A stretch of DNA of 64,000 nucleotides. It comes from Magallana gigas (Eukaryota). The stretch spans positions 15,562,001-15,626,000 of the forward strand of contig NC_088859.1 in assembly GCF_963853765.1 (NCBI RefSeq), in the 5' to 3' direction. The position numbers and the translations under genes are program-made. The notes below the pieces were generated by a model that did no database searches, was not told the origin of the DNA, and was given only the letters and a program-made list of their open reading frames with translations. Position 1 is the stretch's first letter, and each line of letters begins with the position of its first letter. Below are positions 16,959 through 64,000 of this stretch, piece by piece.

Positions 16959-18230
16959 TTACAAACTGAAATACTCAACAACCTTCTGAATAACTTTTGC
17001 TGACTTTGCTATTCTTGCAGCTTTGGGATTTTCTGTCAATGGTTCTGTGAATACATTTCGAATACCATTTTCTGGGTCTCTAGTGTGGATTTGTCTCAAA
17101 TGTGACAAACTGAGGCCATTTACAACCAACTTTCGAAGCATTAAAGCTGACAAAATTTGCATCTTAATAAAGGCTCTAAAGATTCCTTGCATATGTAATA
17201 TGACAAATAAAACAATATTTTCACATAATGTTCTATCTGACAGACACAATTTTGAGTAATACAGCTTTTCTAATGATTTAACATCAGCCATAGCATTATG
17301 GGCCTCATATTCCTCTCCTAGTAGAATCTGCACTAATGTCTCTTGCTTGTAATTGGACAGGTTAACATCTTTCAAAGATTTTTTTGAAATCTTCAGAGTA
17401 TCTAAAAACCCAGTTATATTACCACTAAATCTTTCAAGAAGATTGCTACTTCCTAAATGGTGGCGTAATATAAGCAAGTCAGAACTTTGAATATTATGTA
17501 CAACTATAATTGGATGATTGAAAGAATCTAAAAAGTTCAGGAACGCAATGAGTGCTTCACATGGAGGAACTGCTGGAACTGCCTCTCCCTTGTAGCACAG
17601 ATTGTTTCCATCAAAGGTTAAACATGTTGCTTCAGAGGCCTCCTTGCTGATGCAACGAGTTGGTAGGGCATATATTGAAAATTCTTTTTCCTTGCACTTT
17701 GAAGAATATCAGATGTTCTTCATGCAATAAGGAAAAAAACTAATAAGCTATTGCCTATTATTATTCACAATTATCTCTTTATATAAATCAAACTGAAAAT
17801 GCAAATTTCACAAACCTAATCCTCCAGTTTCCAAATAAAAAAACACCAATGGATATGTGTGTAGGTGTTCTACAGGGGAATTTAGTTGAATGTCATTTAA
17901 ATCAATATATTCTTCCGACCCCAGGCAAATGTTTGCCTGATATGTGTCTACTTTGAAAAAATAAAATAAATAAATTAGATTCTAATGTGCATATATACAT
18001 CAAAGAGATTTTCAATCTTGCAACATACCAATAAAGAAACATGTACCTTCAAGAACAGACTGAGATGCATTCTTTGATTGCCTTTCAGCCTTTAGTTCCA
18101 GTCTCCTACGTTTGACATCCGGCTGCCCAACTCTTAGTCGTTTTCTTTCCATCTTCCTGTCTTTACGTCTCATGTGTCTAAAATGTAGGTACCCGGCGAC
18201 ACAGAACAACTCTTGTTAAGCTACCAATAA
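16959..18230 (-). pseudogene. Decayed spliced transposon gene: Mutator-like transposase C-terminus plus PML-like DEDDh 3'-5' exonuclease
   Basis: Pieces read SVSPGT..RHMRRKDRK..KRRRLELKAERQSKNASQSVLE|..TY, ExoI VFFYLETGGL (catalytic D changed to Y), FSIYALPTRCISKEASEAT, ExoII IIVVHNIQSSD, ExoIII YEAHNAMADV. Frameshifts are present. Family assignment is from motif recall only. Confidence 0.65.
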
Positions 18231-22765: not shown

Positions 22766-25700
22766 GATGCAAGGGTAATCCTGGAAATCCAGGATTTCAC
22801 GGACCTCCGGGAAACCCCGGCCAACAGGGAGAGAAGGGGGACAAAGGTGATCCGGGGAACAAAGGACAAAAAGGAGACCGAGGAGATCCTGGTTCAAGAG
22901 GTGTTTCCGGAGAAAGGGGAGACCAAGGGGAAACTGGACCACGTGGGTTTCCAGGAGTTATGGGACCACCTGGTAACCCAGGACAACCCGGATCATGTTC
23001 CAGCAGGAGCGATAACTTACCATCTGGTATTCTTTAGTGTTTTTTGATTTAAATTTGTGTATATTTAATTCCGATTTATTAGTATTAAAGATATAGAATG
23101 CTAAAAACTATTTGATATAATTTTTTTTAAGACACTTTGTACAGTTTTGAGGCAACTAGTGCATATGATCAAAGGTCCCCTCCATTTTTCCATTTCTTAT
23201 ATTCAACTTTTTTTATTAAAAATTAAATGTGTCAAAACAAACATGAATTTATGTTATTTTTACAGTTCTAATCCGCAAGAGGTTATCACATATGTTAATT
23301 TTAAATCACATTTGAATGTACGTATGTTTTGTCAATTTGCAATAAATAAACCGTATAGTGATAATAGTATTTTCAAACTTTCCTTTCAGTATTGAAGAAT
23401 CTCTTCATTTTTCGAAAAATTCAGGTTTGTAAATATTTTATCAGTCTGTATTTTTCGGTTTCTCTCAAGGACTATATACGGTTTGAACCTAAAATGGCCC
23501 CTTATGTGAACATCGTCATTTTACTGTTATTCTTCGTTTCCTTAGTACAGATATGCATTTGACGTTTCTTCATAATTTTCATTTTGATTTAAGTGCCCAC
23601 AATTTAAAAAATATGACATCATAAAGTTTACCTTTTCCCGCCATTTTCGCAATTTTAGCATAAACCGGCTCGTTTTCAAGCAGTTTTTTTTAAGAAAACA
23701 TTGACCGATTGCTTGAACAACAAAAATATTTTCACTAAAGATGTATCTATCCAGTACTTATAAGTGATAAAAAGTTCGTTCTTGTTCAAAGCGTCGCTTT
23801 ATATTTCCCATTCGAAAAAAAGGAAAATGTCAAATTTTCACTGATTTTGTTTAAATTATAAAAATAGCGTCACTTTTGATGTCATATATTGTCAGTGAGT
23901 GCAAGTAATTCAAATAAATAGGCCAAAAATATATTTTATATCTATTCTTCTGAAAATAACACAACAATTTAATGTACATGAAACACTTCAAAAAATTACG
24001 ATTTATGGGGGCCCAATTTGATTAATATCATATATACGTTAGTTCTTTATTGCGCTGATTTGGATACATTTTATTTTAGTCATTAGAGTTAAAAGTTGAA
24101 AAACTGAAATGGTTACTACATGAAATAATTGGAAAAGGCAACAATGGCAATGGCAATGGTAATAATGGCAATGGTAACAACGGCAATGGCAATGGTAACA
24201 ATGGCAATGGTAACAACGGCAATGGCAATGGTAACAATGGCAATGGCAACAACGGCAATGGCAGTGGTAACAACGGTAATGGCAATGGTAATAATGGCAA
24301 TGGCAACAACGGCAATGGCAATGGTAACAACGGTAATGGCAATGGTAACAACGGCAATGGCAACAACGGCAATGGCAGTGGTAACAACGGTAATGGCAAT
24401 GGTAATAATGGCAATGGCAACAACGGCAATGGCAATGGTAACAACGGTAATGGCAATGGTAACAACGGCAATGGCAATGGTAACAACGGCAATGGCAACA
24501 ATGGCAATGGTAACAATGGCAATAGCAACAACGGCAATGGCAATGGTAACAATGGCAATGGTAACAACGGCAATGGCAATGGTAATGGCAATGGTAACAA
24601 TGGCAATGGCAACAACGGCAATGGCAATGGCAACAACGGCAATGGCAATGGTAACAATGGCAATGGCAATGGTAACAATGGCAATGGCAACAACGGCAAT
24701 GACAATGGCAACAACGGCAATGGCAATGGCAACAACGGCAATGGCAATGGTAACAATGGCAATGGTAACAATGGCAATGGCAACAACGGCAATGGCAATG
24801 GCAACAACGGCAATGGCAATGGTAACAACGGCAATGGCAATGGTAACAACGGCAATGGCAACAACGGCAACGGCAATGGCAATGGCGGCAATGGTAACAA
24901 TGGCAATGGCAACAACGGCAATGGCAATGGTAACAATGGCAATGGCAACAACGGCAATGGCAATGGTAACAATGGCAATGGTAACAATGGCAATGGTAAC
25001 AATGGCAATGGCAACAACGGGAATGGCAATGGTAATAACGGGAATGGCAACGGTAATGGCAATGGCAACAACGGGAATGGTAATAATGGCAATGGCAACA
25101 ATGGAAACAATGGAAATGGAAACAACGGTAATGGCAATGGAAACAACGGTAATGGCAATGGAAACAATGGTAATAACGGCAATGGTAACAATGGCAACGG
25201 CAACAATGGTAATAACGGCAATGGCAATGGTAACAATGGCAATGGCAACAACGGCAATGGCAATGGTAACAACGGTAATGGCAATGGTAACAACGGCAAT
25301 GGCAATGGTAACAACGGCAATGGCAACAACGGCAATGGCAATGGTAATAACGGTAATGGCAATGGTAATGGCAATGGTAACAATGGCAATGGCAACAATG
25401 GCAATGGTAACAACGGCAATGGCAATGGTAACAATGGCAATGGAAACAATGGTTATAACGGCAATGGTAACAATGGAAACAACGGTAACAACGGCAATGG
25501 CAATGGTAACAATGAAAATATTAACAACGGCAATGGCAATGGTAACAATGAAAATAGTAACAACGGCAATGGCAATGGTAACACCGGCAATGGTAACAAC
25601 GGCAATGGCAACAATGGTAACAATGAAAATAGTAACAACGGCAATGGCAATGGTAACACCGGCAATGGTAACAACGGCAATGGCAACAATGGTAACAATG

Positions 25701-25801
25701 AAAAAAGTAACAACGGCAATGGCAATGGTAACACCGGCAATGGTAACAACGGCAATGGCAATGGTAACAACGGCAATGGCAATGGTAACAATGGTAACTG
25801 A
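22766..25801 (+). CDS. Collagen paralog D (5' exons not found), predicted to end in a long Gly-Asn repeat tail
   Basis: Exon 22766-23026 reads GCK plus 24 perfect Gly-X-Y triplets plus GSCSSRSDNLPS (phase 1-1). Exon 23145-23174 reads VLRQLVHMIK (compare copy A QFVHLVK; weak donor gtcccc). Exon 23390-23424 reads VLKNLFIFRKIQ (phase 1-0). Exon 24080-25801 is phase 0. The join is open throughout, but the exon linkage is inferred. Confidence 0.6.
24080..25801 (+). CDS. Terminal exon, 573 codons plus stop: SLELKVEKLKWLLHEIIGK then ~555 aa of (GN/GNN)n
   Basis: Good acceptor ttttattttag|tca. The frame is open to TGA at 25799-25801, exactly where the repeat ends. AATAAA at 26091. It is missing from the ORF track because the frame has no start codon (TAG directly upstream). 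Confidence 0.75.
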   Translation, partial: SLELKVEKLKWLLHEIIGKGNNGNGNGNNGNGNNGNGNGNNGNGNNGNGNGNNGNGNNGNGSGNNGNGNGNNGNGNNGNGNGNNGNGNGNNGNGNNGNGSGNNGNGNGNNGNGNNGNGNGNNGNGNGNNGNGNGNNGNGNNGNGNNGNSNNGNGNGNNGNGNNGNGNGNGNGNNGNGNNGNGNGNNGNGNGNNGNGNGNNGNGNNGNDNGNNGNGNGNNGNGNGNNGNGNNGNGNNGNGNGNNGNGNGNNGNGNGNNGNGNNGNGNGNGGNGNNGNGNNGNGNGNNGNGNNGNGNGNNGNGNNGNGNNGNGNNGNGNGNNGNGNGNGNGNNGNGNNGNGNNGNNGNGNNGNGNGNNGNGNGNNGNNGNGNNGNGNNGNNGNGNGNNGNGNNGNGNGNNGNGNGNNGNGNGNNGNGNNGNGNGNNGNGNGNGNGNNGNGNNGNGNNGNGNGNNGNGNNGYNGNGNNGNNGNNGNGNGNNENINNGNGNGNNENSNNGNGNGNTGNGNNGNGNNGNNENSNNGNGNGNTGNGNNGNGNNGNNEKSNNGNGNGNTGNGNNGNGNGNNGNGNGNNGN

Positions 25802-34788: not shown

Positions 34789-37700
34789 CTACTCAATGAT
34801 AATGACTTCACTATCGGAGGAATCAGTATTTCCCTCATCTTCGCTCTCACTGCTGGATGTGTCCTGGTTTTCTCTAATTGGCAAGAGGATCTTCTCTGGA
34901 AGATCGGTGACTTCTTTTTCCTCCTTCTTCGCCTCTTCTTCCTTTGGTGGGGGAACGTTGACATACTTGTGGGTGGTCAGAAAAGAACCGTATGTGCTTC
35001 CCTCCTGTGAGGTCACCTCATCTTTGGTGCTGGTGGGTGATGGTTCTGGGACTTCCTCAGAGTCCGTCCCATGCTCTGGGATGGACAGGGACAATTTTTG
35101 GTCCGACCGCTTTAAACTGTCAACGCGGAACATCTTGTGTTCCTGTCCTGCTCTCTGAATGGCAATGGTGGCCTCCATGTCAATCATTGCATACTCGATG
35201 GATGTTGATTTCTGCATTTTTAGGGACTTTTGAGAAGCTTTACGACTCTTACGAATTGGTTTCTCACGGAGATCAATCTCGGCATAATTCAACTGACGCT
35301 CCGGTTGTTCTCCCGTAAGTGACATTGACTGTGAAAATGGCGGAGATGAGGGTGGACTTGTTTCAAAGTTCATGTATGATATTTTGTTAGAAAAGGTTCT
35401 CTCCGAAAACTTTGAGTACAAACTTTCTGAACGAGAGAATTTCGGCAGGTTTGGAGAATCTCGGTCTTTGCTGAAAGCGCTGAACTGGGACACTTGATCA
35501 AACGTAAATACACTGGAATTCATGGAGGGGGAGCGAGGGGTTTGGGAGGGACTGGAGCTGAGACTCTCGTTCAATGGCCGCTTCCTCTCCAGTACAATGT
35601 AGCAGTTTCCAGCCCTGGGCCTCATGACGGTGTAAGCTGGGCTGTTCCTCAGGGCGTTCTCACTACAGATACTGTCGGTGTAAGAAGACAGGGAAATTTC
35701 ATCATCAGACGAGTGGTCCTGGTCCAACTCCACCACCACAGCTGTGGACCGGGAATCCTGATCATCCACTGTACTGCTCACAGATGCTGGGGATCCTTCT
35801 TTTACAGCTGCTGCAAATATTTAAATTAACATAATTTTAAAATATTCCAAGAAGTCACAAGTATTTACTTATACACATTTACATTTTTTTGAGCCAAACA
35901 TGTTGATATCTGTTGTAATATTGCTGCAAGAACTTTACGTAATTAAGGGGACTAATTGGTCAACAAATTAATCATCAGATATACCTTAAAATTATAAATA
36001 TGATATTTTAGATCATAAACTATCATTTACCAGAGTCAAAATCTTAATATTTCAGCTCTTTTTAAAAATTAGTTCCCTATATGTATCTTTAAACAGAACT
36101 CTTTGTTTCAAGGAGATTAATTAAGTCTAAATAAGGCCATGGCCAAGGAACAATGTTAAGCATAAAAATTTAAGCTTCATTCAAACTTTTACCTTGTCTG
36201 GGTACCCATATTGATTCCTCTGGCTCCTCTGCAACTTTCAAAGTTTTAGACATCGAATCATCTGTATCTGTTGGTCCTATCAGAGCATAACTGTGCTCTG
36301 ATCTGAATGACGAGATGCTTTTATTATCCAGTGTGTTGTTATCTTTCCACAGTTCCTCTTTTCCATTGGAGGGAGCGTTCTCCAAAACAGGGGACAAAGC
36401 ACTACTTTGGTAGTTCTTTTGCTTTGGAGGTACAAATGGAGCCAAAGAAGCTACATATTTAGCAATAGCTGCAGCTTCTTCGTAAGGCGAAAATGCTTTC
36501 TTAGGGCACATGTTCAGCTTGAAATCGTCAGATTTCAATGAGTTTGTTTTCTCAGAATCTGTATCACCATAATAGTCCTTTACTTTAGAATATTTCATCA
36601 GATCAATCAGCTTTTCATCATCAGTTTTGCTCGAGGTCTGGCACAGTGGCATTTTGTATGATGGTTCATCCACTCTCAAAACAGTAAATATTCCCATTTC
36701 CTGGGTCTTCCGAAACTTCTGGAAGGATTTGGGTGACATGCATTTTCCCTCTGCATTACTTTTGGATGCTGAATCTTCCGAATCTGTTTGTCCATCACAA
36801 GGTCCTGTGTAGCCAGTCCTGCTTGTAGAATTGGATTCAGTACTTCCCGTGTCATTGGACTGTGTCATTTGGTCTGGTCCTATTAAATGCCTGTGGTCAT
36901 CAGTGGTCCCATTGGAGCAAAATGAATCTTGAGAAGTTTGATGAAAATTGTCTTTGGGAGCAGCGGCAGCAGCAGTAGAATTCATCTCCAGAAAGCTACT
37001 TCTGTTTGGAAAGCTAGAGGATCTTCTTCTTTCCACAACTTCAGACTGGTTCTGTTCAATACTGCTGTTGGCAGCAGACGACACACTTGATGTTGAGAGA
37101 TCCTTGACACTTGCATTTTCCTTACACACATGAATGTTTGATAAGGTTTTTTCTAAACAACTCTCACTAGAACTAGAGTTAAGAAGATTTTCTTGACTCT
37201 GAGACATGCTTTTCCTGTTACCCGAATTCCTTCGGATCAGTCTGGTAAGAAATCCTGGACTTTTACCAGGGTTTTCTGTACTTTTGTCATTTGGTGCAGA
37301 TTGCACTGAGGTTGTACTGGCACTTTTATGAACTTCCTGAGAAGAATCTTTGAGAATATTATGTTTCTGGAAATTTATCAAGTTTGGGAAAGGCAAAGAG
37401 GATTTTCCTTTTAACACCTCTTTGGCTTTTTCTGGTGACATGTTTTTGTTTGAGGAATTGTCTTCAGAGTTACGTCTTTCAATCTTTGGCGAGGCTGCTC
37501 CATTATCATCTCCGACAATTACAGAGTCTCTCACTGTTTGAGCGTTATGAACATAACTTTTTAGGGACTTTATATTTTCAAGGACTGATTTCTTCTGACT
37601 AGTTAAATGATGCATGAGCAGATAGTTTTCTTCCCTTACAGGGGTACTAGCAGCACTGCTGGGTGTGTCACTTAAACTGAGAGAATGATGAAACACCGGG

Positions 37701-40700
37701 CGAGAGAAACGACTCTCTGCAACTGAGGAAGCACTGCTTGATCGGGTGTACATCTTCTGAGGAGAATCTGAAGATTCCACTTCATCCCTGGATTTCAGTG
37801 TTACCCGTTCATCTTCAAACATCCCACTCATATCCATGTAACCGCACACATCATCGGGATTCAAATTTTCCTTTCCTGCAGAAGAAGGTGATCTCTTTGG
37901 AAGCCTCACTTTCAGTGGACCATCCTTATAATTGGACAGCTCAGAGGAACTTCCATGGGGAACACGTAGAGCCAATTCAGACCTTCTTCTGCTGCTTGGT
38001 GATGCATCCACTCCTGCCATAAGAAGATAATTTGGCTCCCGAATCGGACTCATCACTGGATTTACACCTTGCCTAGGACTTGAATATTGAGAGGAATACT
38101 TATTTCTTTTAGACAGATGGGCTCTGTGCTTTCCGGGAGGGATGGGAGGGGGACAGAACGGTCTACTCTTCCTCAGGAGTGCTGGTCCCTTTGGAGGTAA
38201 AGCAGGTGGTTGGGCGGCAGCTTCTTTGGCGGCAAAATCATTTGCGTATATACATTCAGTGTTTGCATAGTTTGACTCAGGAAGATCAATCGGAATTTTG
38301 TGAGATTCACCATCAACCCCTCTAACACAGCGATCTCTTGGAGATTTGGATTCCCTGTCATAACTCTCGCTTCTGTGAGACAGGATGCTACAGGTATCGT
38401 CGTCCGACTGGTTCCGTACGTACACATGACATTTATCCACATCTCTCCCTCCATCGTATTTCTCTAAATTGACATACGGCAATGGAGCAGACATTTTGGA
38501 AAAAGACGGAATTTTGCGTAGCCGCGACACCAAGTTGGGACTCAAAAGGACACTGTCGGAAAAGCCCGAAATACTACTCTGTGAACTAATGGTGGAATAT
38601 CGGTCGAGTCTGGGACTTAATGTGGCACGACGATGGTTCTTTGATTTTTTCCTTGGTAATGGTGGTGGTTTTTCTGCAAGATGGTCAGTTGTTTTCACTT
38701 TAGGTTTCTCCTTCACACCCTAAAAAAGTATCATAGTTTATTACATTCAGTTTTGAAGATTCATGTTCAATACCAAATATGGTATATTTGAATTTATAAT
38801 AAAACATACCTCATTGTAATTTTACTAAATTCAAATTTTTTTTGAAAAGTTTTTCTACTTTATAAATACTTGTATGTTTAATCGCATACACATATATTAC
38901 CATCATGATTTCTTCCAAAAGAGTTATTTCCCTTTGCAGTACTTCTTCTGATTTTTGAAGATTTTCCAGCTCGAGTCTCCGGCATTGTTCAGTCTCCTCT
39001 TCAATTCTGGAGGGTACTGATGCCACAGAAATGGATTTGCTGCCCTCCGATTGATTGCCATAGAACCCGTAGCCACATAGAGAGGGAGCACTGGCCGACA
39101 CCTTCACCATCTGCCCTAGGGCAGATACAGAGTTCTCTCCCGAGGAAATACTCATCTGAGAGTCGGAACTCGGTCCACTGGCAGAGCTCAGGCAGGCTTC
39201 AGACTCGATCCACTGCTCGATTCTGTTGTCTACACATTCTTTGCTGAGTTTATGAGACAAAATATCCGAGACATTTTTGAGTTCCTGAGAATTTTGAGAT
39301 ACACAATGGGTTGGTTGTTGAAATTGTTTAGTATTCAGATATAAATTAGAATTGTCCACTTTCCTTATTCGACTAGGGGGAACGTCGTATAACAAGTATT
39401 TTCTTCTCCCAGTCTCAAATTCATTTTTGTTTCGCAGATGTTTTTCGTTGTAAGCAGATGCATGGGAAAAGTCAGTGAAACTCAACGAGTGCCGTTTTGA
39501 TCGCTTGTCGTCAAAGAAGTTTTGGTCTGTGCAGTTTGACCAGTTCGGGAAATCTCTATACTGACTGTTATCGTTGAAGGAACTGTTGAGTGGCTCCAAA
39601 TGGTAGTCAAATAGCTGTGATCCTGTAACACATTTAAATCAGACTCATGAGGGGCTCTCTCAATATATCAGTTAGTTTAAAACGATGAAAGATGATCAAT
39701 TTAATTTAAAATCATACTCCACTTGAAAAAAAAATAAATTTGTTCATTGTCTATAAAATATAGCATATATTTGAAATTCTTTTCAAATTAACATGCTTAA
39801 TTTAAACAATTCCTCCAAATGGAAAGGCTACACTTTTGCTGTCTAAAGCATATCATTTAACAAATGCATAAATAAAACTAATTCTTTACTTTAAAAGCTG
39901 ATAAATAAAAATGAATTGATCAATAGCAAAGTTAGATTAATTGACTTACTTCGTTTGATAGACTTTCTACAGCTGGCTGTTTTCCCTTGACTGGCCAAGC
40001 TAACGATTTCATTGATCAACTCTGCTTGTTCCGACGTAAAAGCATGGACTCCAGCACCTACAAAAACACAACACTGGCCATGTTACTGTTATCAATTATG
40101 CATGTTTATTCATGGTTTTTTTTTTATGAAATAAAAAATAAGTTATTTTTTTTAGTGTAATGCAATGCAAGATGCATGTGTATCTCCTTGCAAATATATG
40201 TTAACATGCTGCCTGCAAATGCATGACTTAGAATTAAAATTCAACTATCAATTGAGTATGTATTAGAGGATGATAATTAATTTTTATTTTTGGAAATTTT
40301 AAAATTGACATCCCTCCTAAAAAAAGGAGAATATGAAATTAAATAATTTACAATTTATTCAAAGCATATTTCGAGAGAGAGAAAAAAATATGAGAGAGAG
40401 AGAGAGAGAGAGAGAGCCTGTTTTAAGTACGGTAGAAAACACATCTGAGGAGAGATTGGTCTAAAAAAAAAAGATTTTGCACTTGACTTACCTTTCCCAC
40501 AATTTGATCCACCTTCGAATATGAATTTTTTGTCCACCACACCAAATTTCCGCAAGTCTGAAATCTGCCAGATGGCTAAGACTTTGGGAGGAGCACCGTT
40601 TGTCAAGCAGAACTTCTGCCGGTGGATGTGCATCCGCAGAACGTCCAAGGGCAGCTTACTGTTGTTAGGAACATTGGTCACTTGCACTTTGAACTGGTCC

Positions 40701-61530: not shown

Positions 61531-61557
61531 CAGGAAGTCGAGAGATGGTATATAACA
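61531..61557 (+). promoter_or_regulatory. Candidate core promoter of the EF-hand precursor gene: ETS motif CAGGAAGT plus TATA-like gtatataa
   Basis: The motifs lie ~50-75 bp upstream of the ATG at 61607; motif match only. Confidence 0.35.
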
Positions 61558-61606
61558 GCAAACAGTTAATCCTCATACCATAAACGTGTTAACCTTCTCT
61601 GGAGAC

Positions 61607-63793
61607 ATGGTAGCTATAATTTCTGTCAATTTATTTTTCTATTTAATTTGTTGAATCTTGAATTCTTTGTATTTTATTTTATAGTAAGAGTTATCAACCA
61701 TTAAGATCATTTACAATTTGAATTAATTTTGCGCGTTGTTTAATTTGATTGCATTTCCAGTACTGTTCTTTTTCTACCTGTAACTTGAATTCGTTTTATC
61801 TATTTGCTATCTTTTTACTCAAATCAAATATTACTATATATTGATGGCGCTTTAACCGTCATTTGTTCTTTAAACTAAATTGATTATAAACTCCAATTCT
61901 TTATTTTTTTTTTCAGGCCAAATTCCGCTACCTTACCATTCTTCTTTTGATTTGTCTACTGACCATTGATCATTCCGAATCATGGCGGCGCAGGCGTTTC
62001 CGGCGGTTTACCAGGAGAGTTGGCCGCGCAATTAGAAGAGTCAGAAGAACGATACAAACGGTGAACACAGCGGTCGGCGTCATCCGGGCGGTTGGAGCTA
62101 TAGCCGGGGCAGGAAAGCGATCAGCTGACGATGTATGTTTTTAAAAAAAAAATATTTTTTTCGTGGTATGATAGTTAACTGTGACTTTTTTAACAGTCTA
62201 TAATTAATGTTTTATGAAATTGTTTTAAACATGAAAATTTTATAGTTACTGTAGCTTGCGTATGATAATAGAATTAGATATAATAAATTTTTAAATGAAA
62301 AAGGGAGCTTTCTGAAATGCACATGTATAGAAACTGGTGCATATGCACATTCTTTTTATAGCAAAAAGAAATATTAACGTGGTTAAAATACAATTCCGTT
62401 TTTACTACGTATGTCGGAAATTCTCTAAACTATGAACCCTACAGAATTGCTTGAATTGTGATGAAACACTAAGTAGGGCAAAATTCTGTCAGTCAGTTGG
62501 GAGAGAGCAAACACTTTTTTTTCGTTGAGGCGGGTTAACATGAGTTAAGGTATTTTGCCTTATATTGCAGGTTCTTCCAGAAATAAACGTTTGTGACTTT
62601 AGCACCCTGGATTTAGACAAAGACTATGATGTGGATGAAGAAGAACTGATAACTCTCATACAAATGTCAGGATTAGAAGAACTAGAAGATTTGTTTGAAA
62701 AACTAGATAAAGATGGAGGCAAGTATTTGTTGGGTTTTTTTTTGGGGGGGGGGGGGTGGTGGATATGTTTGTTTTTTGTTTTGTTTTGTTTATTTATAGA
62801 ATTTTCTGTTAAAAATTATTCATAAGAACCTGTTTAAGTTGGTTTTTCGGTAACCTCACAGCAAACCAATCTTTTAAAATAACAAAACTATTCCAATTGA
62901 AATATAAATCACATAAATCAAATAAATTCTGTTAAGGACAGAAACAGGACGATATTTTAAAAATGCTTTTCGACATGTGATGAATTTTAAACAAAATACT
63001 CTTTAATCTTCTTTAAAGTTGGAAAAAGGTTTATTTTTCATCTTGAAACATTATACAATGTAGTTTAAATGGTAGAGTACGATGCATAATATTTGACTGA
63101 CTATTGCGTCGTTCAAGATTTTTTATATTAGGCTTTAAAAAAAAATCTTAAATATTATAAACAATGATGATTAAAACACTACAATTTTTGTTTTGTAATA
63201 GAATTTTTTTTTTTACAAAATACACGTTTTTACTCATACATATTGCTAAATGAAATCAATGATAAAATTGAGTGATTTTGACCTTGTCTTATATTGTAAT
63301 TATAAGGTTATTTTATGCTTTTGAAAAATAAAATAGATAGATTTGTTTACAATTGTTCGAAACACATCTTTGTTACAATATAAAGTATGGTTTGATTGAT
63401 AATTATATTCAAAAAATAATGAATGACTTAATAAAAGTATTATCATTATGCTATTGAACAGATAAGAAAATTACACAAGAGGAGTTCGATTCTTCCGACA
63501 TTATAGATGAAATATGCTCCGAGGATGAAAAAGGTAAGTAAATCCCAATGTCATTCAATGTTTTTAAAAAAATAATTTTGGTCTAAAATACTCATGTTGT
63601 GTGCCTAATTCAACAATACTGTATATTCAAAATTAACAACATGTAAACACAACAACACGTTAAAAGATTTCATTTTAAGGAAAACAACTCATGTCATGCA
63701 ATTACTGTAAGTTCTATGCTACTGGTATTTCTTCATCTATTTCATATAGAAGACAAACAAATAGAAAATGAAGATGCTAAAGGAACAGTATAA
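61607..63793 (+). CDS. Secreted precursor (160 aa): signal peptide, Arg-rich cationic peptide, GKR, acidic two-EF-hand prodomain; candidate antimicrobial peptide
   Basis: Exons 61607-61609 (ATG only), 61917-62132, 62571-62718 (GC donor g|gcaagt), 63462-63533, 63750-63793; 483 nt in frame. Reads MAKFRYLTILLLICLLTIDHSES-WRRRRFRRFTRRVGRAIRRVRRTIQTVNTAVGVIRAVGAIAGA-GKR-SADD..C..DLDKDYDVDEEEL..DKDGDKKITQEEF..C..KGTV*. Confidence 0.88.
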
Positions 63794-64000
63794 AAGAACC
63801 ATTGTGTTACAAAATATGATATCGACAAACTGCAATAGAACGGACACTTTCTATCATTACTGTGAAAAGAATTATGTAAAAGGGGTTATTCAGTCAAATG
63901 AATTTTACTAGATATTTCTGGTTTTACATTTCATTACAATTGAAGACGGGTTGTGGTAAATTCATGGTAGTAAATTAATAAAGAAAAAAAACCCATATTG

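Follow-up and report, generated by a model that had tools for sequence, protein, structure and literature searches.

Can a cysteine-free, arginine-rich peptide that shares its precursor with an acidic EF-hand domain be the effector of a new oyster antimicrobial peptide family? The locus that raises this question lies at positions 61607-63793 (+) of a 64,000-nucleotide stretch of Magallana gigas DNA (contig NC_088859.1, 15,562,001 to 15,626,000), which in its entirety we call the window. The original prediction, drawn from the letters of the window alone, had proposed such a family, with calcium controlling the release of the peptide. We found that the locus is a five-exon gene for a 160-residue precursor, and that it is a real and very highly transcribed Pacific-oyster gene. 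The precursor reads as a secreted prepropeptide that would yield a linear, amidated, membrane-active host-defence peptide from an EF-hand propiece, within a family specific to oysters; we favour this reading and give it about an even chance. The alternatives are weighed below, where the evidence on each is given.

Results

A five-exon gene is transcribed at very high levels

Contigs from three RNA libraries were mapped on the window, and depth was counted in words without normalisation. Exon depth was 5,000-33,000, against 30-100 in introns, giving an exon/intron ratio above 100 in the three RNA runs. The protein P0027 (160 residues), from an independent transcript assembly, is the spliced gene model apart from T159A, and P0079 (transcript contig L021), from a relative that is 92% identical, has the same boundaries exon by exon. 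Because of the spliced RNA, the exon depth, P0027 and the orthologs in three oyster genera, the gene cannot be taken for a chance open reading frame. Coordinates of all its parts are collected in Table 1.

Two splice sites needed RNA for their placement. At the acceptor of intron 1, an RNA contig end at 61916 reads ...CTCTGGAGACAT / ...GGAGACAT(G), joined to exon 2, and L021 aligns over 61537-61610 and resumes at 61916. Intron 3 begins with a GC donor. Here RNA ends at 63460, present in runs X17 and X18, have the sequence ...GACAAAGATGG and continue into exon 4, the transcript contig places the end of exon 3 at 62718, and both P0027 and P0079 read D-K-D-G-D-K-K; on the strength of these RNA ends and proteins, the GC donor (62719-62720) is the one in use, and the Asp at position 5 of the second EF loop is made by splicing. 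The donor matches the consensus G/GCAAGT. An alternative GT donor 5 bases downstream, paired with an AG 5 bases further on, would give a product of equal length with Gly in place of this Asp, but the RNA shows the GC form and not the GT form. An old UniProt model, K1RKD8 (P0084), is mis-spliced at exactly this donor. Four of the five M. gigas paralogs described below (P2-P5) have ordinary GT donors at the corresponding intron, as apparently does the fifth, P6.

The predicted mature peptide is basic, amphipathic and framed by processing signals

Signal peptidase favours small residues at positions -1 and -3. The hydrophobic N-terminus of the precursor has small residues at both positions and ends in S-E-S, directly before Trp24. 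The peptide that would follow has 43 residues, among them 14 Arg and no Lys, Asp, Glu or Cys (net charge +14, isoelectric point about 12), and runs to A-G-A, after which G-K-R is found. All counts and coordinates that had been predicted for the signal peptide, this peptide and G-K-R were correct. Taken together, the signal peptide, the dibasic site and the Gly before it present the pattern of a secretory peptide processed by a proprotein convertase and amidated by peptidylglycine amidating monooxygenase. The predicted 43-residue amide would have a monoisotopic mass of 5030.01 Da, and its C-terminal half alone 1980.15 Da.

The N-terminal half starts with Trp and is Arg-rich and amphipathic, while the C-terminal half is hydrophobic, rich in Gly, Ala, Val and Ile, and carries a net charge of only +1. 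The amphipathic faces that had been noted in the N-terminal half were supported by its helical hydrophobic moment of 0.82, against a shuffle mean of 0.33; only 0.5% of shuffles reach this value. The four paralog peptides that we analysed are built in the same way (net +9 to +11). No match to the peptide was found among solved structures in the PDB or among Pfam families. Natural antimicrobial peptides with runs of 3-5 Arg form a recognised group (PMC12371492).

The propiece is modelled as an extracellular EF-hand pair

The remaining 91 residues, the propiece, hold 34 Asp and Glu against 8 Lys and Arg (net -26, isoelectric point 4.05). Two 12-residue EF loops (residues 87-98 and 119-130, the second reading D-K-D-G-D-K-K-I-T-Q-E-E) are flanked by Cys81 and Cys141, and in both loops the ligand positions 1, 3, 5 and 12 are acidic and position 8 is hydrophobic. 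We scanned five family members against Pfam, including the EF-hand profiles PF13405 and PF13499 and the SPARC-type profile PF10591. The window protein passed EF-hand_6 (29.4 bits against a cut-off of 25) and, marginally, SPARC_Ca_bdg (22.1 against 22); it fell below the threshold of EF-hand_7 (24 against 30), which the relatives P0037 and P0045 passed.

In the AlphaFold2 (AF2) model, the predicted local distance difference test score (pLDDT) was 80-85 from about residue 78 to about residue 144, and two short strands, at 93-95 and 125-127, were paired in the way typical of an EF-hand pair. Foldseek matched it to calmodulin, NCS-1 and troponin C lobes with probabilities of 0.97-1.0; the E-values reached only 0.02-0.1 because the query was the whole 160-residue model. 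Sequence and PDB matches of the propiece were to calmodulin lobes, NCS-1, troponin C and calbindin D9k, and the calmodulin-melittin complex 8aht was among both fold and sequence matches. The ESM Atlas returned nothing beyond generic EF-hand clusters, with scores up to 0.80. The strongly acidic domain of the original prediction, with its two EF-hand loops bracketed by two Cys, was thus borne out by charge, Pfam, AF2 and Foldseek, and we take the propiece to be, as modelled, a genuine EF-hand pair of the extracellular type. A Cys81-Cys141 disulfide probably closes the pair.

Does this domain grip the peptide? A Ca2+-dependent, calmodulin-like clamp of the propiece on the basic helix, with calcium switching release or activity, would accord with the classical binding of basic amphipathic helices by Ca2+-loaded EF-hand lobes, with the appearance of 8aht among the matches and with the complementary charges of the two parts (+14 and -26). 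Against it, AF2 gave no confident docking, and the canonical calmodulin-binding spacings (1-5-10, 1-8-14) were not found by eye. A complex prediction of P0027 residues 24-66 with the EF domain (71-145) and two Ca scored 0.00, which we count neither way. Oyster extracellular fluids and sea water contain about 10 mM Ca2+. At this concentration the EF-hands would be permanently loaded outside the cell, and a switch of micromolar affinity would never be off there. We therefore consider such a clamp quite unlikely. The calcium-dependent release that had been proposed finds no support, given the undocked model and the ambient calcium, and calcium gating of any kind is unlikely.

The gene belongs to an oyster family with clustered paralogs

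Six-frame searches of the genome with exons 2 and 3 as queries found five paralogs on the same chromosome, at C7:12.914-12.963 Mb on the minus strand and 2.7 Mb from the window gene, giving six genes in total. P2-P5 have four exons with intron phases as in the window gene, signal peptides that start M-F-R-Y, and peptides of 32-46 residues with a (G)W-R-R start, a basic amphipathic stretch and an Ala/Val/Thr-rich tail; G-K-R-S-T-D/N-D and an EF-hand pair with two Cys follow. The sixth member, P6, is divergent: a basic W-R-R-A-R-K-F-F start leads into a stretch rich in Ser, Gly and Asp, and another amphipathic segment comes between this stretch and G-K-R. Its peptide region resembles the 77-residue insert of Saccostrea echinata P0037. 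Of the P3 gene, the RNA libraries contain approximately the exonic fraction.

Within the cluster, exon 2 of P3 and P4 is near-identical (dS, the synonymous divergence, is 0 in the peptide and 0.07 in the signal peptide), whereas their exons 3-4 differ (dS 0.25); P3 and P5 show the opposite pattern. These comparisons suggest exon-level gene conversion or mosaic histories.

Members of the family were found in Crassostrea angulata, C. virginica, M. gigas, Saccostrea cucullata, S. echinata and Ostrea edulis, and all carry database names such as 'uncharacterized protein', 'EF-hand (calcium-binding) domain-containing protein' or 'S100-G-like'. Beyond oysters, we searched 1.84 billion representatives with a profile of the EF-hand exon and 5.8 billion proteins with a full-length profile; these searches returned only generic multi-EF-hand proteins, at E-values of 3e-7 or weaker, and no Mytilus protein. 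In a literature search whose coverage largely left out subscription journals, we found no description of the family, even when we searched broadly on oyster antimicrobial peptides and EF-hands. By these searches the family is oyster-only and uncharacterised.

In a maximum-likelihood tree the members fall into two clades (support 100/99): the window gene is of type A and the cluster of type B. The acidic C-terminal tail encoded by exon 5 is restricted to type A. Since Ostrea, Crassostrea and Saccostrea are represented in both clades, the duplication that separated the types would be older than these genera, under midpoint rooting.

Processing sites and calcium ligands are invariant while the peptide varies

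We aligned 20 family members. K68, R69, S70, C81, C141, D87, D91, D119, D123 and E130 are invariant in all of them, E98 nearly so, and 15 of the 20 have Gly before K-R; Trp follows the predicted signal cut in 15 as well. Mean pairwise identity was 43% in the signal peptide, 24% in the peptide (the most variable region), 89% in G-K-R-S and 52% in the EF domain. The homologues, as had been anticipated, carry very different inserts in place of the peptide, from 32 to 77 residues long, and 19 of the 20 are cationic (+4 to +14). A variable peptide across the family, cationic inserts and multi-copy clustered genes make up a pattern typical of effector precursors.

This contrast between domain and insert could also mean that the EF-hand domain, or the uncleaved protein, is the product: a small extracellular Ca-binding protein of mucus, shell or matrix, with the basic segment as an anchor to anionic surfaces or a dispensable propiece. 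Such a role is in keeping with the higher identity of the EF domain, with its invariant Ca ligands and Cys and its marginal match to the extracellular SPARC module, with the non-cationic insert of one homologue (P0043) and with an expression as high as in secreted structural proteins. However, the invariant K-R-S and the frequent preceding Gly point to cleavage and amidation, the Trp-Arg-Arg start, amphipathic periodicity and hydrophobic tail are kept in both subfamilies, and among orthologs of the window gene the peptide is conserved above the EF domain. On balance we hold it to be improbable that the EF-hand part is what the gene is for.

Type A genes have multiplied in Saccostrea (P0039, P0043, P0045, P0078 and P0085), where they form long branches and carry very different inserts: Ser/Arg repeats, Pro/Arg-rich (P0085, from S. 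cucullata), Asn/Gly/Arg-rich and, in one case, acidic. The peptide in Crassostrea and Ostrea is, in contrast, near-constant. A further reading takes up such diversity and sees the signal peptide and EF-hand scaffold as a carrier of diverse cationic effectors, in the manner of cathelicidins, with the Ca2+-loaded propiece silencing the helix much as calmodulin does melittin. We regard this combination as unlikely. The effector types that it would embrace are helical Arg/Lys-rich, Pro/Arg-rich and long composite.

A host-defence peptide is favoured over a signalling peptide

In the reading that we favour, that of a host-defence peptide, the precursor would enter the secretory pathway and be cut by signal peptidase before Trp24. 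The EF-hand pair would fold and load Ca2+ in the secretory pathway, probably clasped by its disulfide, and the -26 of the propiece would offset the +14 of the peptide, so that the precursor might stay soluble and harmless to the producing cell before cleavage. A proprotein convertase would then cut after the invariant Lys68-Arg69, a carboxypeptidase would trim the basic residues, and peptidylglycine amidating monooxygenase would convert the product to a 43-residue C-terminal amide. Once free, the peptide would attack anionic microbial membranes, at oyster surfaces or in the haemolymph. Very high mRNA levels and TATA promoters that lack kappa-B-like sites fit a constitutive surface or haemolymph effector.

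Several observations weigh against this reading. AF2 modelled the peptide within the whole precursor at a pLDDT of 40-46, which is what a peptide that folds solely on membranes should give, and left it undocked on the EF domain. Five Arg-Arg or Arg-run sites inside the peptide are possible convertase targets. Both loops of the window protein lack Gly at loop position 6, as do the four M. gigas cluster copies, and the affinity for Ca2+ may be lower for this reason. The insert of P0043, from Saccostrea, is acidic (net -2). A scan of 1 kb upstream of five family genes found no kappa-B-like, Rel or notable C/EBP sites, which is weak evidence against an induced immune gene; a TATA box lies 49-73 nt 5' of the ATG in all four cluster paralogs checked.

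The pattern of constraint belongs with these points. Between M. gigas and C. virginica orthologs the peptide is 93% identical and the EF domain 67%; between M. gigas and O. edulis the values are 63% and 53%. The ratio of nonsynonymous to synonymous divergence (dN/dS) in the peptide was 0.14-0.17 where measurable among M. gigas paralogs (Nei-Gojobori), and no positive selection was detected between them in what is a comparison of few sites with often saturated dS. From the ortholog identity and the low dN/dS, the peptide is a constrained functional product, with no arms-race evolution in Crassostrea and Ostrea; purifying selection of this kind would be expected for a fixed target, unlike an arms-race effector. 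The 'hypervariable' insert of the original prediction therefore holds across the family and not among the orthologs of the window gene, in which the peptide is the best-conserved part. These values leave a role on a conserved target, or in signalling, open.

The signalling alternative is that the whole peptide, or its 21-residue C-terminal half cut at the last Arg-Arg, acts as a hormone, neuropeptide or cytokine-like factor, with the EF-hand domain as a precursor module. Besides the ortholog identity and low dN/dS, it can draw on the Ser after G-K-R, as in prohormones, on the several internal dibasic sites and on a precedent, pleurin/HCS2, a molluscan neuropeptide precursor with an EF-hand motif (PMC8398477); in the oyster pleurin gene (L020), a phase-1 intron falls in the EF loop one codon from its position in the window gene. 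However, the exon depth in bulk RNA, unnormalised as it is, lies far above what would be expected of a neuropeptide, an amphipathic 43-mer of +14 is unlike known oyster neuropeptides, and the main text of a survey of oyster ganglion neuropeptides characterised by mass spectrometry contains no matching string. Moreover, the peptide diverges wildly in Saccostrea copies, its C-terminus is no PRX-amide, and an hhalign comparison of the family profile with the pleurin exon finds nothing. A signalling role thus seems to us unlikely, and the family remains a good candidate for a new oyster antimicrobial peptide family. The novelty that had been claimed for it stood, in that no described antimicrobial family matched in our comparisons and no paper on it was found; its antimicrobial action is what we infer from the features above.

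Features of the locus and other observations in the window

Table 1. Positions of the gene parts in the window and of related genes elsewhere in the genome
Feature	Position	Strand	Description or support
TATA box, TATATAA	61549..61555	+	58 nt 5' of ATG
Start codon ATG	61607..61609	+	final three bases of exon 1
Intron 1, GT-AG, phase 0	61610-61916	+	RNA contig end and transcript contig L021
Exon 2	61917-62132	+	remaining signal peptide, peptide, G-K-R, S-A-D-D
Signal peptide remainder	61917..61982	+	residues 2-23, S-E-S end, Trp24 next
Predicted mature peptide	61983..62111	+	residues 24-66, 43 aa, net +14
G-K-R	62112..62120	+	putative amidation donor Gly and dibasic convertase site; Ser70 next
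S-A-D-D	62121..62132	+	propiece residues 1-4, end of exon 2
Intron 2, GT-AG, phase 0	62133-62570	+	joint 62132>62571 in three RNA runs
Exon 3	62571..62718	+	Cys81, EF loop 1, linker helices, start of EF loop 2
Cys81 codon	62592-62594	+	
EF-hand loop 1	62610-62645	+	D-L-D-K-D-Y-D-V-D-E-E-E, residues 87-98
EF-hand loop 2, first four residues	62706-62717	+	exon 3
Intron 3, GC-AG, phase 1	62719..63461	+	splits codon 5 of EF loop 2; RNA, P0027/P0079
Exon 4	63462..63533	+	remainder of EF loop 2 (to 63484), exit helix, Cys141
Cys141 codon	63515-63517	+	invariant in family alignment
Exon 5	63750..63793	+	acidic C-terminal tail and stop (63791-63793); joint 63533>63750, GT-AG, two runs
3' untranslated region	63794..64000	+	extends at least to window end; RNA depth to 64000 in run X17, L021 to 63949
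Cluster of five paralogs, loci L013-L018	G000:C7:12914431-12962930	-	six-frame searches
P6, divergent sixth member, locus L018	G000:C7:12961872-12962930	-	extra coding exon lengthens peptide region
Oyster pleurin gene, locus L020	G000:C5:23278890-23281940		signal, LFYTSSKENDYPRF, G-K-R, acidic region, K-R, one C-terminal EF loop

Elsewhere in the window, an imperfect minisatellite of 1.6 kb (24140-25791; periods 15, 21 and 36; units like AATGGCAATGGTAACAACGGC, with 64-75% matches) gives rise to open frames of 457-580 codons; they occur on both strands and in several frames, and Pfam matched none of them. On the minus strand, the last 70 residues of a 172-codon open frame at 16959-17477 match 'PML, C-terminal domain' (PF25244, E 2e-17), and this frame probably belongs, as one exon, to a gene of the TRIM/PML-like or exonuclease type. 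Three consecutive long frames at 34789-39599 (-), of 330, 848 and 262 codons, have no Pfam match at E up to 0.001; they may represent a large set of exons, or else a mobile element that is unclassified.

Discussion

To our knowledge, the antimicrobial peptides described from the Pacific oyster are defensins, big defensins, a proline-rich peptide, BPI and molluscidin, and none is linear, helical and cecropin-like. The family presented here is very highly transcribed, has six genes in the genome and is present in every oyster genus with data. Should its peptides prove microbicidal, they would supply the mucosal or humoral defence of oysters with a major arm that has so far been missing, with relevance to aquaculture mortalities from Vibrio and ostreid herpesvirus 1 (OsHV-1) and as salt-adapted peptide templates. 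If the peptide is instead a signal, it would be an abundant, conserved oyster peptide hormone missed by current neuropeptide surveys.

A defence peptide would also be the second bivalve case of an EF-hand propiece after mytimycin, in which the function of the EF-hand module is unknown (PMC8004829), and the oyster precursor, simpler and free of Cys, would then allow the role of the propiece to be tested.

Comparison with known systems

Mytimycin, an antifungal peptide of Mytilus, is alike in overall plan: a dibasic site is followed by a C-terminal extension with an EF-hand (PMC8004829). Both systems are bivalve and combine a signal peptide, a mature peptide, a dibasic site and an anionic EF-hand extension. 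In contrast to the linear, Cys-free oyster peptide, the mature mytimycin has 54 residues and 12 Cys (PMC8004829). No Mytilus protein appeared in any search with the family or the prodomain, so homology of the two EF-hand extensions is unsupported; with no Cys in its mature region and no sequence link, the window protein is not a mytimycin.

Myticalins and modiocalins, of Mytilus and Modiolus, are linear and cationic too; some have a Gly amidation signal, and an anionic extension comes after the dibasic site (PMC5577615; PMC12294457). The oyster family shares with myticalins the signal peptide, a Cys-free Arg-rich peptide (with Gly after it in myticalins A and B), the dibasic site and the anionic extension, and both are multigene, clustered and lineage-restricted. 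The myticalin extension is, however, of low complexity with no mention of an EF-hand, whereas the oyster propiece is modelled as a folded EF-hand pair. In myticalin genes, which have three exons, the ATG stands at the 5' end of exon 2, and a conserved intron of phase 1 closely follows the cleavage site (PMC5577615; PMC12294457); the window gene has five, with the ATG ending exon 1 and a phase-0 intron after the cleavage site. Searches with the family gave only oyster and generic EF-hand proteins, and the signal peptide of the window protein does not resemble the myticalin signal consensus as published. Gene structure, signal peptide and type of extension together rule out membership among the myticalins.

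Outside bivalves, the design of the peptide recalls the cecropin type. In cecropins (those of insects and cecropin P1 of Ascaris), pleurocidin and dermaseptins, Trp is found at position 1-2, the N-terminal helix is basic and amphipathic, the C-terminal part is hydrophobic and rich in Ala, Val and Gly, and the C-terminus is amidated; in the Ascaris cecropins a basic site is also followed by an acidic C-terminal propiece. The oyster peptide has the same architecture (Trp start, basic amphipathic helix, Gly/Ala/Val tail, putative amide), but with Arg in place of Lys and an EF-hand pair as propiece. Five family members gave no match to the cecropin family (PF00272) in Pfam at E up to 1, and no PDB peptide matched, so we reject membership here too.

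Finally, pleurin/HCS2 resembles the window gene in its signal peptide, amidated peptide with G-K-R, acidic region and EF loop split by a phase-1 intron. The oyster loop reads D-R-N-G-D-Q-L-I-T-K-N-E, and its intron lies upstream of the window-family position. Pleurin differs in its PRX-amide ends and in having one EF loop and no bracketing Cys, and a comparison of family profile A3 with the oyster pleurin exon by hhalign found no similarity (probability 0.3%). Because membership in the mytimycins, myticalins, cecropins and pleurins failed in turn, we place these genes as a new family among precursors that combine a linear, cationic, amidated peptide and an anionic propiece, in which the unusual feature is a propiece made of a folded EF-hand pair.

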